The notes: generated by a model from the sequence alone, not told the origin. 5,344 nucleotides of DNA from Bugula neritina (GCA_964035545.1 CAXIUT010000010.1:1-5344), one strand, 5' to 3'; positions 1 to 5,344 are shown, counted from the first letter of the stretch. Numbers and translations: made by a program.

Positions 1-87
1 CCAACCCCCAACCCCAACCCCAACCCCAACCCCAACCCCAACCCCAACCCCAACCCCAACCCCAACCCCAACCCCAACCCCAACCCC
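1..87 (+). repeat. Left telomere, (CCCCAA)n C-rich strand
   Basis: Uninterrupted CCCCAA repeats from base 1, ending in CCCC at 84-87 and followed by unique AT-rich sequence. C4A2/T2G4 is the known ciliate (Tetrahymena-type) telomeric repeat. Confidence 0.99.
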
Positions 88-119
88 TAAGATATTAAAT
101 AATGATAGTATAAACAATT

Positions 120-1075
120 TCATATATAAGTAATCTATTATCGATATAGACCTTCTCTATGATATCCTTTTTCTTCCTGCATAGCCTTCTGGCAACTCTC
201 TACTTCCTACAGCAAATCGATCTCCGAAAACACCTTTCCATCTCTGAGTCTTATCTGAATATCACTATCAGAACAAGATAGTTGAATATTTTGGTTTCTT
301 CCACTTAAAATCACAATAATAGGAAAATATAGCTTCAATGAGTTTTTTTATTTCTCTTTTACTTTTCCCTTCTTAATTATCCACTTTTCTATTGCTTATT
401 TTTTTGACTACATAGTCTTAAGAAATTATTTTTTAGTATCAACAATATTTTTGACTTTCCAGTATTCCCTTGTTTATTCTTCTTTGCGATTTATCACATT
501 ATAACTCTTTTCTGATTGACTGCTATGATTCAGAGAATTCTGGTATTTTTATAGTACTTTTGCTGATATCATCACATTTATGGCGTCATAAATTCTTCTC
601 TTTATGTTTTTTAGATCTTTCTAAGTTTCCTATATTATAATTAAAATACAAATCCAGATATGCTTTCATGCATCAGATGCTTTTCGATAGCCTAAGCCAC
701 CTAACTATGAGAATAAAAGCTGTTTCTTTAAAGGGTTTTGAGGAGCAATGACGATAAGTTTTTAAGACCTCTTCTCGAAAGCTGATCGTATTTAACCCAA
801 TCTTGAATCATAAGAGGGCGTTAGGCAGAAAAATATTGCTTTTCTAAAGATTCAGGATTGCTATCGAAGATATCTCTGTTAATATCTCCAAAGTTGATAG
901 TTTTATCGAAGTTAAAGGAATGAAGATGATATGATTAAGAGTATTTTTATAAATCTGGAACAGATTGATCTGAATTAGATTCTCTTTAGTGATTGTAGGA
1001 TTAGTTGTAGAAATAGATGTCGTTGTATGATGAGTTGAGGCCAAGCCAATTGTTCGCTGATCTTTTACTATCCAT
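120..1075 (-). CDS. E2F/DP-family transcription factor, DP-like (311 aa; exons 1075-650 and 629-120; TAA/TAG read as sense)
   Basis: ATG at 1075-1073, TGA at 122-120, with no in-frame TGA after removing intron 630-649. The translation contains RRGLKNLSSLLLKTLXRNSFYSHSXVAXAI...KDLKNIKRRIYDAINVMISAKVL, matching the DP winged-helix domain (GLRHFS...YNEVADEL...KNIRRRVYDALNVL). A coiled segment follows, then LYFPIIVI, which resembles the LPFIIV motif of the DP dimerisation domain. Confidence 0.9.
630..649 (-). other. 20-nt spliceosomal intron in the DP-like gene
   Basis: The minus strand reads GTATTTTAATTATAATATAG. Removing it (phase 0) joins the two halves of the DP DNA-binding domain in frame; keeping it leads to a TGA shortly downstream. 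Confidence 0.9.
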
Positions 1076-1265
1076 AATTTTAATTATAAAAGGAGAAAAT
1101 AACCAAAATAGCAAAGAAAGAATTTTTAATTCGAATCTAAAACAAATCAAATTACTTTTATTAGAAGTTTAATTGTTGATTTGGAGGGAACTTTCTTTGT
1201 TGATTTTAACCAAATTGTTATTCAAAATAGTATTTGTAAATAACAGAAAGCGGACTTACCCCTAC

Positions 1266-1580
1266 TCATCTCCATCTAACTCCATTCTTCTATTATCTAT
1301 CAAAATATCCACTCTTATTCATCATATTAATGATCTCTTTTATTTTTTGTTTGAGTTATTCTTGTTTATCAAGATAATTGGGTGATGATTGTTGTTTCTT
1401 TTTATTATTATTTAGTGTTTTTGGTTGGTTGTTAGTTTTAGTAAGTTTGAATTTAGTTTGTTGCAATGAATATAGTATAGAGATTTAATTAATTCGTTGG
1501 ATAAGAAATAGTTGACTATTTATATTTTAGATAATTTTTGTAAAATTAATTTAATTTATATACTTATATTTACAACCAAA
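1266..1580 (-). CDS. Possible coding exon of an unresolved small gene
   Basis: A 105-codon stretch between two TGAs encodes ...KKKQQSSPNYLDKQEXLKQKIKEIINMMNKSGYFDRXXKNGVRWR. The minus strand has coding-like A skew, but there is no clear upstream ATG without assuming an intron. Confidence 0.2.
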
Positions 1581-1755
1581 TCAATAAAAAACATCTAAGA
1601 CTAACCTTAGATAGCCCTCTTAGCTCGATAAAGATTGCTGATTATTACAATAATGTGAGTCTTATCAAATGAACCATCAGTTATCTTGAATTAATACCTT
1701 TTATAACAAAATTGTATTCATTGATGATCGATTTTGAACCAAATAAGGTAAAATA

Positions 1756-2427
1756 ATGCAGAAAAACGATATTGAAAGGAATAAACTAAAGAAAATAAGT
1801 CAATTCATACTATTTAAACTAAACAATAAGAACTTTTATAAACGAAAATGTTAGAAATAAATCTTGAATTTCTCTTATAATATCAACAATAGTCAACTTA
1901 AAACACTTCAAAGAGAAGAAATTCAAAGAGTTCTTATAAATCTAAACTGTTTAAATAGAAAAAAAGGAAATTTAGAATTTTATCTATCTTTTAAAATCAC
2001 TGATATCTCTGAAATAACAAAATAAATATAAAAAATATCAAACAATAACGAAATAACAAACAAAAATTCGCATTAGAAATGCTAATTAATACAAATTAAC
2101 TATAGTTAAAAACTGATGATCATGTAGTGCAATATATTGTTAAAGTTTATAATAAATCCATAAAATAAACTGTCAATTAAAAGTTAAAATAGTTCCTCTT
2201 TATCAAAATTAAATATCAAATCTTTTTTATCTTATTTATAGATATTTAATTATGTTAAATTCTTTACACGGCGAAATCCCAAGGTTAAAAGCATAATCAG
2301 TCGAACGAGCATACGCTTAACATAAAAAGTAAGTCAACACTAAGTAGATGTTTCAAGCAGTGTATCAGTACTTTTGAATCTGGAGCTATATCTAAACAAT
2401 AAAAGGAATGCGTGGTGGGTTGTTTGA
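1756..2427 (+). CDS. Possible hypothetical protein (TGA-free frame of 223 codons; true 3' end uncertain)
   Basis: ATG 1756 opens MQKNDIERNKLKKISQFILFKLNNKNFYKRKC...LKTLQREEIQRVLINLNCLNRKKGNLEFYLSFKITDISEITK. The next in-frame TGA is at 2425-2427, inside the Tim gene. The plus strand is A-rich like the sense strands of the other genes, but I recognise no homology. Confidence 0.3.
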
Positions 2428-2549
2428 GTAAATATCGAGAATCAGAAAAGTACATGGCCTAGAAGATTCATAAAATGATGACTGAACACGCAGCTCAAAA
2501 TCCTGACATAAATGCATTTTATAACTAAGAAGGAGGTTCAAAAAAATGA
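2252..2549 (+). CDS. Small Tim mitochondrial intermembrane-space chaperone (Tim9/Tim10-like, zf-Tim10/DDP family), 92-93 aa
   Basis: Exon 2 encodes CFKQC-ISTFESGAISKQXKE-CVVGC-LSKY, a CX3C-X15-CX3C motif with the CF and KY features of small Tims, and ends at TGA 2547-2549. ATG 2252 (MLNSLHGEIPRLKAXSVERAYAXHK) joins it in frame through an intron starting GTAAGT at 2329. The N-terminal exon is less certain than the domain. Confidence 0.85.
2329..2347 (+). other. Tiny intron in the small Tim gene: 19 nt (to TAG 2347) or 16 nt (to AAG 2344)
   Basis: GTAAGTCAACACTAAGTAG has a consensus GTAAGT donor. Both acceptors restore the frame between ATG 2252 and the cysteine motif; the unspliced frame stops at TGA 2375. 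Confidence 0.75.
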
Positions 2550-2603
2550 TGTTGTTAATTTTGTACCCACTTAAAACCTTAAATTAATTTATTCTTTTAT
2601 CTA

Positions 2604-4951
2604 TCAATAGTTGACCTTCTTCTTCTTTTTCTTAGATGTCTTTGATATCGATGCCTCAACAGAAGAACATTATTTTGATATTTTCTTATTTTTAGAATAT
2701 TTTTTGTTTTTCCATCGATCCAGTCTCGATTCTTCAATATGCCAAGTCACTCGATTTTGAGATATATTGAAGTTATCAAGAAAGTTAGTCAGGACAATTT
2801 CCTATTCAGAAGCTACTATCTTATTTTACTTCTATTGCTGAGAAGGACCAATATTTGATTTCAATTCTTTCATCTCTCTCTATATCTTTTTCCTCAGTTT
2901 TTGTTGTCTTTTGCTTATTTTAACTTATTTTTCAACAGGCTAAGGTTCCTTCTTCTATGCCTCATATTCTTACTACTTTAATTTACTCATCAGCTATCTC
3001 TTGATAAATGATTAACCGTTTACATTTTCTAAGAGCATATCTTGAATTTAGTGGGTAAACTTTTTGAACTATGCTTGCTTTTCTTGTCTTTTAGCCAGTT
3101 CTTACTTAGTGATAAAAACAGTTTTTTACTCGTCTTTGTGGTGTTTGCATCGTCCGAATTAGAAGTTTTTTATTTCTTGAACACATTTGTAACTGTTTTT
3201 ATGATGACGACATTTTCTATTCGAAAACTTATCGTTCACCATCTGAAATATCTTCTTATCTTTTTACTTCTATTTCATAAATTTTTATACCTCTCTGAGA
3301 AGTTATTACTTTTCTCTCTAAAGCTACTTTCGATACCTCTCTAACTTTTCCTTCTCCTCCTACAAATAACACTTCGAATGCTACTGACGATTTATCCTAT
3401 CATTCTGCTTAGCTATCTTCTTCTTACTCTTCTACAAATAAACTGTTATCGGCTCATCGCTATTCTTACTATGAGATATCACGAACTCTTGATTGATTTT
3501 CAAATCATTTTTATGAAGGTATCTCTGAGATATTTAAAAATTGATTTTTTCCTGATTCTAATCAATTTAATAAGGATCAAGAGAAGAATTAAAGTCATCT
3601 TAAAGAATAAATTCAGGAGGATTATCGAAATCTGCACTCTTTATATTCGATAAATCATTATTATCATTATTTTATTACACTCCAGTCGATAAAGATAACT
3701 TAGTTAAATTTTAATGCTCTTTGTTTTGATAAGGCAACTGCTCCACTTCAATTTATACATTTTATTAAATCAACTCCTCCTTGTTTTCAACTACCTTAAC
3801 ATAAGAAATACTTTAATAGCAATTTTAAGGTGAATCTTCTTGACTAGAAGTATCTTACAGCTCATATTTTAGTTATTGATTAAACTAAAAAGCTTATAGA
3901 AGTTTTGATTACTATTATTATATTTTCAACTAATCAAGCCTGTTCTGATGAATCGATTTAGAAAGTTCCTCTTTATATTTCACCTGCTCACTAGAACTTT
4001 AAGAATTTAAAAACTGATTTCGAAGCTATTCGATTGAACAGTGATCTTTATAATATCATCATTACCTATCTTTCTTTTCTTTGGATTATTATTTTGATGT
4101 CTTTTTGGATTTGCCTGGTCTTCATCAAGAGATTGTTTTACTAAATACATATATTCTTCAGGATTAAATCCAAGTGTCTTTATCATTTTAGCATTAGTCT
4201 ATATCAAATTTTTAGCCAACTAATCCTCTTAGAACTTAGTAATTTCTATTCTTCTAGAATAACCTTCATTATCAGCATTAATGAATTTACACTTACTGGC
4301 AAGTGATATGACAGGTAACATATGCATCGGCTGAAAAGTTTACGAAGACTCAGTAAAAATATCAAGTATCAAAGAACTGATCGATTGTTGAAAAGTACTA
4401 CAGTTAATATCTTTAACTGGTGCATATTCGTAGAGTATTTTCCATAAAGTATTTACTTCTTTAGTTGAATCACAAAGGTACTTGTAGAATATGATGAAAG
4501 CATTCGATAGAGGAGGATATATATTTTTAAGAGTGGGAGAGTCTGATTCTTGTTTGAATTTGGACCAATTTTTACGCCAAGAAGTACTAGTTTAAGAAAC
4601 TTTACTGAGATGATGGCAATTTGTTTTTAGAAATGAAAAGGAATGATCGACGAGATGCCTTAGTTTCCAAATGACAGTTTCGATAGTACTTTTAATGGTT
4701 TCATAGAGAGTTAAAGAAGTACAATTTTAGAATACTTTTTCTTAATGTATTTTTCTATAGAGTTCAATTTTAAGTTGGAGAGTTACTTTTTTATTACAGT
4801 AGAAGATAGATTATACTTGTTATTTTATGTATTGTTCGATGTTGATTTAAGGATTAGGCTAAGGATAGATTTGTTCGAAGGGTTGCTATTGACCACTAGG
4901 AAGACGTTATTTTATTTTGAGAGGGGGTTATTCTGGTTGTTATTCTGTCAT
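2604..4951 (-). CDS. Hypothetical protein, 775 aa, Lys/Glx-rich with coiled-coil character, probably nuclear (exons 4951-4066 and 4045-2604)
   Basis: ATG at 4951-4949 (MTEXQPEXPPLKIK...), TGA at 2606-2604. After removing intron 4046-4065 there are 776 codons (including the stop) with no internal TGA. It contains PKKRK, a C-terminal SKKKKKK and a Cys/His cluster. I do not recognise the family, and additional 3n-length introns cannot be excluded. Confidence 0.82.
4046..4065 (-). other. 20-nt spliceosomal intron in the 775-aa gene
   Basis: The minus strand reads GTAATGATGATATTATAAAG. Removing it (phase 1) links two long TGA-free frames, and it is the same length as the DP-gene intron. Confidence 0.8.
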
Positions 4952-5251
4952 GATTATCAATGAGATTTATTATTATTATTTTAGATGAAAAATATATAAA
5001 TAAAGGTTATCTCAACCATTCGCTTCAAAGTAAATAAAACTAAATAATTTGGATTTCTTTTTAGTAACATTTATAACTATAATCAATGTTTTCTTTTTAA
5101 AATAGCATCAATAAAAAATATTAATTCACGTGTGATATATTTTTGATAATATAAATGACACTACTTTCATAGTTGTCAACACTTACTAAATATAAATACA
5201 ATATTCATAGTTAATATTTTATTAATTATCTATATTTATATTAAAAATCAA
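4952..5251 (-). promoter_or_regulatory. AT-rich 5' subtelomeric leader that should contain the promoter of the 775-aa gene
   Basis: These 300 nt are all the DNA between the ATG at 4951 and the telomere. The call is positional only; no specific motif is established. Confidence 0.5.
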
Positions 5252-5344
5252 GGGGTTGGGGTTGGGGTTGGGGTTGGGGTTGGGGTTGGGGTTGGGGTTG
5301 GGGTTGGGGTTGGGGTTGGGGTTGGGGTTGGGGTTGGGGTTGGG
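5252..5344 (+). repeat. Right telomere, (TTGGGG)n G-rich strand
   Basis: Uninterrupted GGGGTT repeats from 5252 to the end, in the opposite orientation to the left tract, as expected for the other end of a linear chromosome. Confidence 0.99.

Follow-up and report, generated by a model that had tools for sequence, protein, structure and literature searches.

The stretch of DNA analyzed here, called the window throughout, comprises 5344 bp (CAXIUT010000010.1, positions 1 to 5344, from the Bugula neritina assembly GCA_964035545.1) and carries three intact genes enclosed by two telomeres, an arrangement reminiscent of the small macronuclear chromosomes of ciliates. The DNA is not of human origin. 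The genes, designated g1, g2 and g34, encode a DP-type transcription factor, a small Tim protein and a conserved protein of 775 amino acids, respectively. Inward-facing telomere tracts at both ends had been claimed in the original prediction, which was made from the sequence alone, and a regular expression count bears this out. The left telomere (1..87) consists of CCAAC, 13 perfect CCCCAA units (6-83) and a final CCCC, while the right telomere (5252..5344) is made of 15 perfect GGGGTT units (5252-5341) followed by GGG. The 5' end on the left carries the C-rich strand and the 3' end on the right carries the G-rich strand, a polarity that fits a linear chromosome. Elsewhere in the window the same count revealed not even two consecutive units. 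The sole irregularity in the telomere tracts is an extra C in the outermost left unit (positions 1-11, CCAAC CCCCAA), probably an error at the end of a read or else natural heterogeneity of the terminus.

Between the telomeres the GC content is 27-30%, with stretches down to 17-22%, and coding sequence makes up 69% of this interior. The non-coding flanks are short. A trailer of 32 nt (88..119, 12.5% GC) separates the g1 stop codon from the left telomere, and an AT-rich leader of 300 nt (4952..5251, 17% GC) connects the right telomere with the start codon of g34. The stop codons of the convergent genes g2 and g34 are 54 nt apart (2550..2603), and the divergent genes g1 and g2 are separated by a spacer of 1176 nt (1076..2251, 22% GC).

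The reading frames become visible when TGA is taken as the only stop codon. Open reading frames (ORFs) have at most 104 codons under the standard code but reach up to 484 codons when TGA alone terminates translation, and in 500 first-order Markov simulations an ORF of at least the observed length arose in 0.4% of the runs. The coding frames contain no TGA in 1178 codons, whereas the other two frames have 29 and 40, and all three genes are terminated by TGA. In total, 88 in-frame TAA or TAG codons (together TAR) are spread across the three genes. Each gene contains a single GT..AG intron, of 20 nt in g1, 19 nt in g2 and 20 nt in g34, and all of these begin with GTA and end with AG. Introns of roughly 20 nt had been predicted, and the forecast of "at least three" intact genes can now be sharpened to exactly three, all with homologues in other assemblies (tblastn E = 1e-20 to 1e-91). 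These homologous loci are referred to below by number (L001, L014 and so on). An exact look-up of two standard-code ORFs from the window gave no match.

The gene g1 (complement(120..629, 650..1075), minus strand) encodes an E2F/DP winged-helix factor of 311 aa, as judged from Pfam, a match in the PDB and orthologues in L001 and L014. Its stop codon is the TGA at 120-122, and its intron (630-649, minus strand, 20 nt) reads GTATTTTAATTATAATATAG. A 23-aa piece of the window (552-620, minus strand) reaches 27.3 bits against the Pfam family E2F_TDP (PF02319, cut-off 25.7), and the stop-free L014 orthologue scores 38.4 bits against the same cut-off. The RRxYD motif can be read directly as KRRIYDAINV. 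We call g1 DP-type because the sole PDB match of the L014 orthologue is human DP-2 (1cf7_B, E = 9.6e-8) and not its partner E2F4. A Pfam match to the DP dimerisation domain was not obtained on the stop-free C-terminal pieces, which the TAR codons keep short. The g1 intron is found at the conserved position in L001, again with 20 nt, and is absent in L014. Furthermore, the C-terminus ..ITYI-TGA and the position of the stop are conserved in L001.

The gene g34 (complement(2604..4045, 4066..4951), minus strand) ends with the TGA at 2604-2606 and contains an intron at 4046-4065 (minus strand, 20 nt, GTAATGATGATATTATAAAG). In the window, as in L001 (22 nt), L014 (20 nt) and L008 (20 nt), this intron interrupts one and the same codon (KI|DH), and splicing yields collinear products of 775 aa for the window and 767 aa for L001. 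A four-gene model with a separate "g3", starting at the ATG at 3865 and carrying an intron at 3839-3858, was considered and rejected. The supposed genes "g3" and "g4" are a single spliced gene, because the conserved DNA in question is coding (YELEDTSSQED) and the peptide ahead of the supposed start is conserved as well, because neither the window nor L001 has an in-frame ATG in the downstream half, and because the conserved intron joins the two halves. A +1 or -1 frameshift at the "g4" TGA was also dropped, since the shift needed would differ between species, and the intron accounts for all cases.

The g34 protein combines an all-alpha N-terminal part with a Lys/Glu-rich C-terminal part, and neither the window pieces nor the relatives gave a Pfam family. 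An AlphaFold2 model of P0017, a homologue of the N-terminal part, is all-alpha (pLDDT 62.6), and a Foldseek comparison of this model with the PDB returned no match below E = 0.4. Homologues of g34 occur in at least eight lineages. With an 83-aa piece of g34, a word-index protein search gave no match, and an exhaustive HMMER search recovered 13 proteins, all of them fragments of 55-204 aa. All database proteins related to g34 (P0001-P0019) are fragments of 55-254 aa that are nameless or labeled "hypothetical protein". The gene callers had halted at TAA and TAG. No g34 relative was found in the JGI metagenome contigs (one scan with a single piece, one with a five-sequence alignment) or in one scan of IMG/VR, and a scan of IMG/VR for the telomere pattern returned mainly internal matches in large viral contigs.

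The smallest gene, g2 (join(2252..2328, 2348..2549), plus strand), encodes a Tim9/10-type small Tim of 92 aa with a twin CX3C motif, recognized from its motifs and from Pfam. The two motifs, CFKQC and CVVGC, can be read directly and are 15 residues apart. The window piece of g2 scores 16.1 bits against zf-Tim10_DDP (PF02953), below the cut-off of 22.3, and the L014 orthologue lies just above it with 22.6 bits. The intron of g2 (2329-2347, plus strand, 19 nt, GTAAGTCAACACTAAGTAG) has a counterpart of 20 nt at this site in both L001 and L014.

A reassignment of TAR had been proposed before, and alignment with the relatives confirms that it is real and identifies the residue as glutamate. When the TAR codons of the window were masked as X and aligned with three relatives, they stood opposite Glu 46 times, Asp 19 times, Gln 13 times and Lys 11 times. 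In a BLOSUM-based likelihood (n = 124) Glu was ahead of Gln by 35 nats, and a reading of TAR as Gln was rejected on this comparison. The reverse comparison agrees, as TAR codons of the relatives stand opposite Glu of the window in 19 cases and opposite Gln in three. In the control, CAA and CAG of the window were mostly opposite Gln, and GAA and GAG mostly opposite Glu. With TAR translated as Glu, the identity to the relatives also becomes higher. Individual sites illustrate the exchange. At the single site LHG-E-IPRL the window has GAA, L001 has GAG and L014 has TAA; for the Glu of NEVA, a residue that human DP-2 and L014 both keep, the window has TAG; and the g1 tail R-TAA-TAG-ITYI-TGA of the window pairs with LEEITYI-TGA in L001.

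Taken singly, TAA and TAG each fit best with Glu in the window, L001, L014, L015, L006 and L008. This result per codon excludes the code of Oligohymenophorea sp. PL0344, found in 2023, in which UAA means Lys and UAG means Glu. In the literature consulted, a change of UAR to Glu is reported only for Peritrichia, with a single origin, and was first predicted from transcriptomes of Campanella and Carchesium. As deduced from these alignments, the window reads TAA and TAG as Glu and TGA as stop, and the predicted code is that of peritrich nuclei (NCBI table 30).

The same gene block runs up to a telomere in two other species. L001 (11,130 bp, run DRR438463, 39% GC) has a C4A2 left end and a G4T2 right end, and on it an oxoprolinase gene, g34, two extra genes and g2 precede g1, which borders the right telomere. 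The locus was assembled in four runs as contigs of 10-20 kb and none longer, and in a separate run the contig L002 ends 3 nt inside the left telomere junction of L001. On L014 (6,814 bp, run SRR14234112, 44% GC) g34 is followed by two extra genes, by g2 and by g1, and the 3' end beyond g1 reads GGGGTTGGGG. A telomere just past g1 is common to all three species (window, L001 and L014), whose proteins are about 40-50% identical. The two genes between g34 and g2 are missing from the window, which has 54 nt in their place.

At this shared end the 12-mer TGTTTATACTAT is located 3 nt past the g1 TGA in all three loci, in the window inside the trailer (105-116, minus strand), in L001 at 11063-11074 and in L014 at 6774-6785. 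Its distance to the telomere is 17 nt in the window, 39 nt in L001 and 19 nt in L014, and these loci contain no other copy. The 12-mer might act in the processing of 3' ends or might direct breakage or the addition of telomeres, and it may mark the conserved g1-side chromosome end.

The opposite end behaves differently. In L001 the counterpart of the window's right end is a spacer of about 190 nt that leads into the oxoprolinase gene, with no telomere. This gene encodes a 5-oxoprolinase (81-3900, minus strand; Pfam Hydantoinase_B, E = 1e-34 to 1e-45). It contains several tiny introns and stops short of the left telomere of L001 by about 60 nt, and the chromosome of the window terminates before the corresponding position. 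Since the g1-side end is common and the g34-side end differs, the positions of breakage sites appear to be partly conserved and partly labile.

Not all relatives have small chromosomes. L008, from a more distant relative, belongs to a scaffold of at least 138.5 kb that comes from a river metagenome and in which TAR also means Glu; here g34 is followed by a small conserved gene, and neither g2 nor g1 occurs within 10 kb. The same code is thus used by forms with small chromosomes and by at least one organism whose scaffold is 138 kb or longer. A maximum likelihood tree for the N-terminal part of g34 places the window with L001, L014, L015 and L006/7, and L008 with L016/17 (support 100/100 for the latter). 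L016 is a contig of the NCBI assembly GCA_025491035.1. The order in L022 is g34, geneX, the small and very conserved gene, g2, which is probably the older arrangement.

The small conserved gene is located at 7579-7824 in L001, 3390-3635 in L014, 12152-12331 in L008 and 3424-3642 in L022. Its protein is 100% identical between L001 and L014 over 82 codons and shows 92% identity to L008 and 78% to L022. The neighbouring genes are only 40-70% identical. A Pfam family was not found for it.

Most relatives have a GC content of 27-49%, and the most distant group reaches 56%. Distant homologues with 56% GC are the contigs L022, L023 and L026, whose ends (1-30 and 4706-4735 in L022) are inverted copies of TGTGTTGGGTGTGTTTGG followed by G/T-rich bases. 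L026 has only 1,023 bp and is cut mid-gene. We considered these TG-rich inverted ends as unusual telomeres and rejected this idea, because the G-rich strand lies at the 5' end and hence has the wrong polarity. We take TGTGTTGGGTGTGTTTGG to be a GenomePlex/PicoPLEX whole-genome-amplification primer, and the contig ends would then be amplicon remnants in public assemblies.

The divergent spacer between g1 and g2 is unusually long for so compact a chromosome, and for nanochromosomes in general. It measures about 1.15-1.24 kb in three species (1076-2251 in the window, 8842-10076 in L001 and about 4639-5780 in L014) and keeps its size, not its sequence, across them. In the window the spacer contains no ORF, tRNA or Rfam match and gave no tblastx match to the relatives. 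It presumably holds the promoters of both g1 and g2; a role as a replication origin is only a guess. Scans of the whole window with Rfam and for tRNAs revealed no RNA family, no rRNA and no tRNA gene, the lone Rfam match being below threshold (E = 0.52), and a repeat search of the window returned short AT-rich chance matches only.

Pure C4A2 telomeres, introns of about 20 nt and sense TAA and TAG codons together give the window the anatomy of a complete kb-scale macronuclear chromosome, as originally proposed. We conclude, with a probability of roughly 0.8, that it is such a chromosome of a ciliate using the peritrich code and hence most likely of a peritrich (Oligohymenophorea: Peritrichia). 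The assignment to peritrichs follows from the genetic code in combination with an oligohymenophorean-type telomere and tiny introns. The original prediction had placed the organism in a lineage outside the textbook models. This holds insofar as telomere and code match no known nanochromosome class, nor Tetrahymena and Paramecium, and the vaguer part of the claim can now be replaced by a most likely peritrich origin.

Several points weigh against this conclusion. The evidence consists of assembled contigs and comes from one locus family, in which the chromosomes seen are the window, the complete 11.1-kb L001 and one shared end in L014. The right-hand end, upstream of g34, is backed by the window only, as L001 is internal at that position. 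The probable placement among peritrichs is based on code, telomere type and introns. Finally, the pairwise counts that define the code are not fully independent, since the relatives share ancestry.

If general ciliate biology applies, the chromosome would be formed during development of a new macronucleus, when the germline chromosome would be cut at programmed sites. One of these cuts would fall just downstream of the DP gene and the other on the upstream side of g34, at a distance of about 300 nt. G4T2 repeats would be added de novo by a telomerase whose template is of the Tetrahymena type, and the acentric product would be amplified and then undergo amitotic segregation. Transcription of g1 and g2 would start from the 1.18-kb divergent spacer and that of g34 from the 300-nt leader, each gene having its own short promoter.

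The small size of the window could also have another cause, if it derived from a much larger macronuclear chromosome, either as a minor isoform of alternative fragmentation or through rare breakage, and did not represent the normal architecture. Indeed, L001 carries the same block on an 11.1-kb chromosome in which the window's right end is internal, and a relative with the same code has g34 on the scaffold of at least 138.5 kb. However, the telomere past g1 occupies the same place in three species whose proteins share only 40-50% identity, and the L001 locus, with telomeres at both ends, was never assembled beyond 20 kb in four runs. Moreover, the 32-nt trailer and the compact layout resemble gene-sized chromosomes such as those of Nyctotherus, where trailers measure 33-125 nt. 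We regard an isoform or breakage product as unlikely. Short-read assemblers can misjoin repeats, and only one contig of this organism has been seen, so that telomeric reads joined to an internal fragment, or a chimeric contig, have to be considered as well. Such an artefact is highly improbable in view of the correct and opposite polarity of both telomere tracts, of the three intact genes that are spliced in frame, and of the gene order and g1-telomere junction that recur in independent assemblies of two other species.

The identity of the organism allows for alternatives, too. An undescribed ciliate lineage outside the peritrichs might have acquired Glu for both TAA and TAG independently, together with C4A2 telomeres. 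Ciliate codes change repeatedly, and the oligohymenophorean with UAA as Lys and UAG as Glu came to light only in 2023. In contrast, the single reported event of UAR to Glu belongs to Peritrichia, C4A2 telomeres and narrow distributions of tiny introns suit Oligohymenophorea and peritrichs, and the 25-46% GC of peritrich assemblies compares with 27-49% in most relatives of the window, although the most distant group has 56%. We consider an independent origin of the code quite improbable. Membership in one of the familiar groups, that is Spirotrichea, Armophorea, Phyllopharyngea, Litostomatea or Tetrahymena and Paramecium, would be suggested by the nanochromosome-like size and compactness and by C4A2 being the Tetrahymena repeat. 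Yet the class-specific units C4A4, C4A3 and C4A2T differ from the pure C4A2 of the window, and so do the matching codes, with standard stops in Chaenea, TAA as stop in Nyctotherus and TAR as Gln in Tetrahymena, Paramecium and Oxytricha, the last of these standing against the 35 nats in favor of Glu. The chance that the window belongs to any of these groups is close to nil, and a peritrich-code ciliate, most likely a peritrich, is the reading we retain.

Ciliate classes are usually sorted by whether or not the somatic genome is extensively fragmented, and Oligohymenophorea, with Tetrahymena and Paramecium, are placed in the second group, as in a genome paper of 2023 that lists them among the non-extensively fragmented classes. 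We tentatively suggest, at somewhat less than even odds, that some peritrichs break up their macronuclear genome into multigene C4A2 chromosomes of about 5-11 kb, that this extreme fragmentation has an origin within Oligohymenophorea separate from that in the known nanochromosome classes, and that other organisms with the same code carry these genes on chromosomes of at least 138 kb. If true, the peritrich-code chromosomes of 5-11 kb would add another transition to near gene-sized chromosomes, and this transition would lie near the two ciliates that are the best genetic models, with the same telomere repeat. Relatives with differing degrees of fragmentation are already present in public data. 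Their comparison could address how breakage sites arise, persist and move, and whether small chromosomes alter the evolution of gene families and rates. A practical consequence concerns annotation, as gene callers using the standard or bacterial code break peritrich-code contigs from metagenomes, wastewater, river data and run assemblies into fragments, which amounts to systematic mis-annotation. In the portions of the literature consulted that mention both "peritrich" and "nanochromosome", no link between the two is made, this scope excluding Chen 2020, Zhang 2023 and Jiang 2025.

Among known systems the nanochromosomes of spirotrichs (Oxytricha, Stylonychia, Euplotes, Halteria and Pseudourostyla) are similar to the window in being kb-scale and coding-dense, with two telomeres and very short flanks, and the window is presumed to share their origin by programmed fragmentation and de novo telomere addition. 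Pseudourostyla nanochromosomes, for instance, are about 2.4 kb long on average. However, the telomeres of spirotrichs are C4A4/G4T4 and most of their chromosomes hold a single gene, whereas the window has C4A2 telomeres and three genes on 5.3 kb. Their TAR codons mean Gln, or TGA means Cys in Euplotes, in contrast to TAR as Glu in the window, and a non-coding spacer of 1.2 kb within the chromosome is likewise unlike spirotrichs. Litostomes also have telomere-capped multigene chromosomes of a few to about 14 kb and tiny introns (16 nt in Chaenea). Fragmentation varies between related families in this group, with multigene chromosomes of about 14.3 kb in rumen Isotrichidae and chromosomes of about 2.3 kb in Ophryoscolecidae. 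Here the telomere unit is CCCCAAT and Chaenea vorax keeps the standard stops, in contrast to C4A2 and TAR as Glu in the window, which on our assignment belongs to another class. Phyllopharyngeans (Chilodonella, and TARA metagenome-assembled genome contigs of 12.5-13.5 kb) resemble the window as two-telomere contigs of similar size from environmental assemblies, but their telomere is CCCCAAA (C4A3) and, where the code has changed, only UAG is reassigned and UAA stays a stop.

Tetrahymena and Paramecium have a C4A2-type repeat like that of the window, likewise stop at TGA only and, if the window is from a peritrich, belong to the same class; the introns of Paramecium are also tiny. Their chromosomes, on the contrary, range from 50 kb to more than 1,500 kb (Tetrahymena has 181 of them) and their TAR codons mean Gln, while the window measures 5.3 kb and reads TAR as Glu. 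The code of the peritrichs Campanella umbellaria and Carchesium polypinum (table 30), with TAA and TAG as Glu and TGA as stop, is the same as in the window and its relatives, except that it was defined from transcriptomes. Peritrich genomes show narrow, Paramecium-like distributions of intron length. A comparison of seven peritrich genomes from 2025 reports N50 values of 2.3-57 kb and 25-46% GC and never mentions telomeres or chromosomes. A kb-scale chromosome capped by telomeres is in itself an architecture of a kind already known, and the window adds a peritrich-code case to it.

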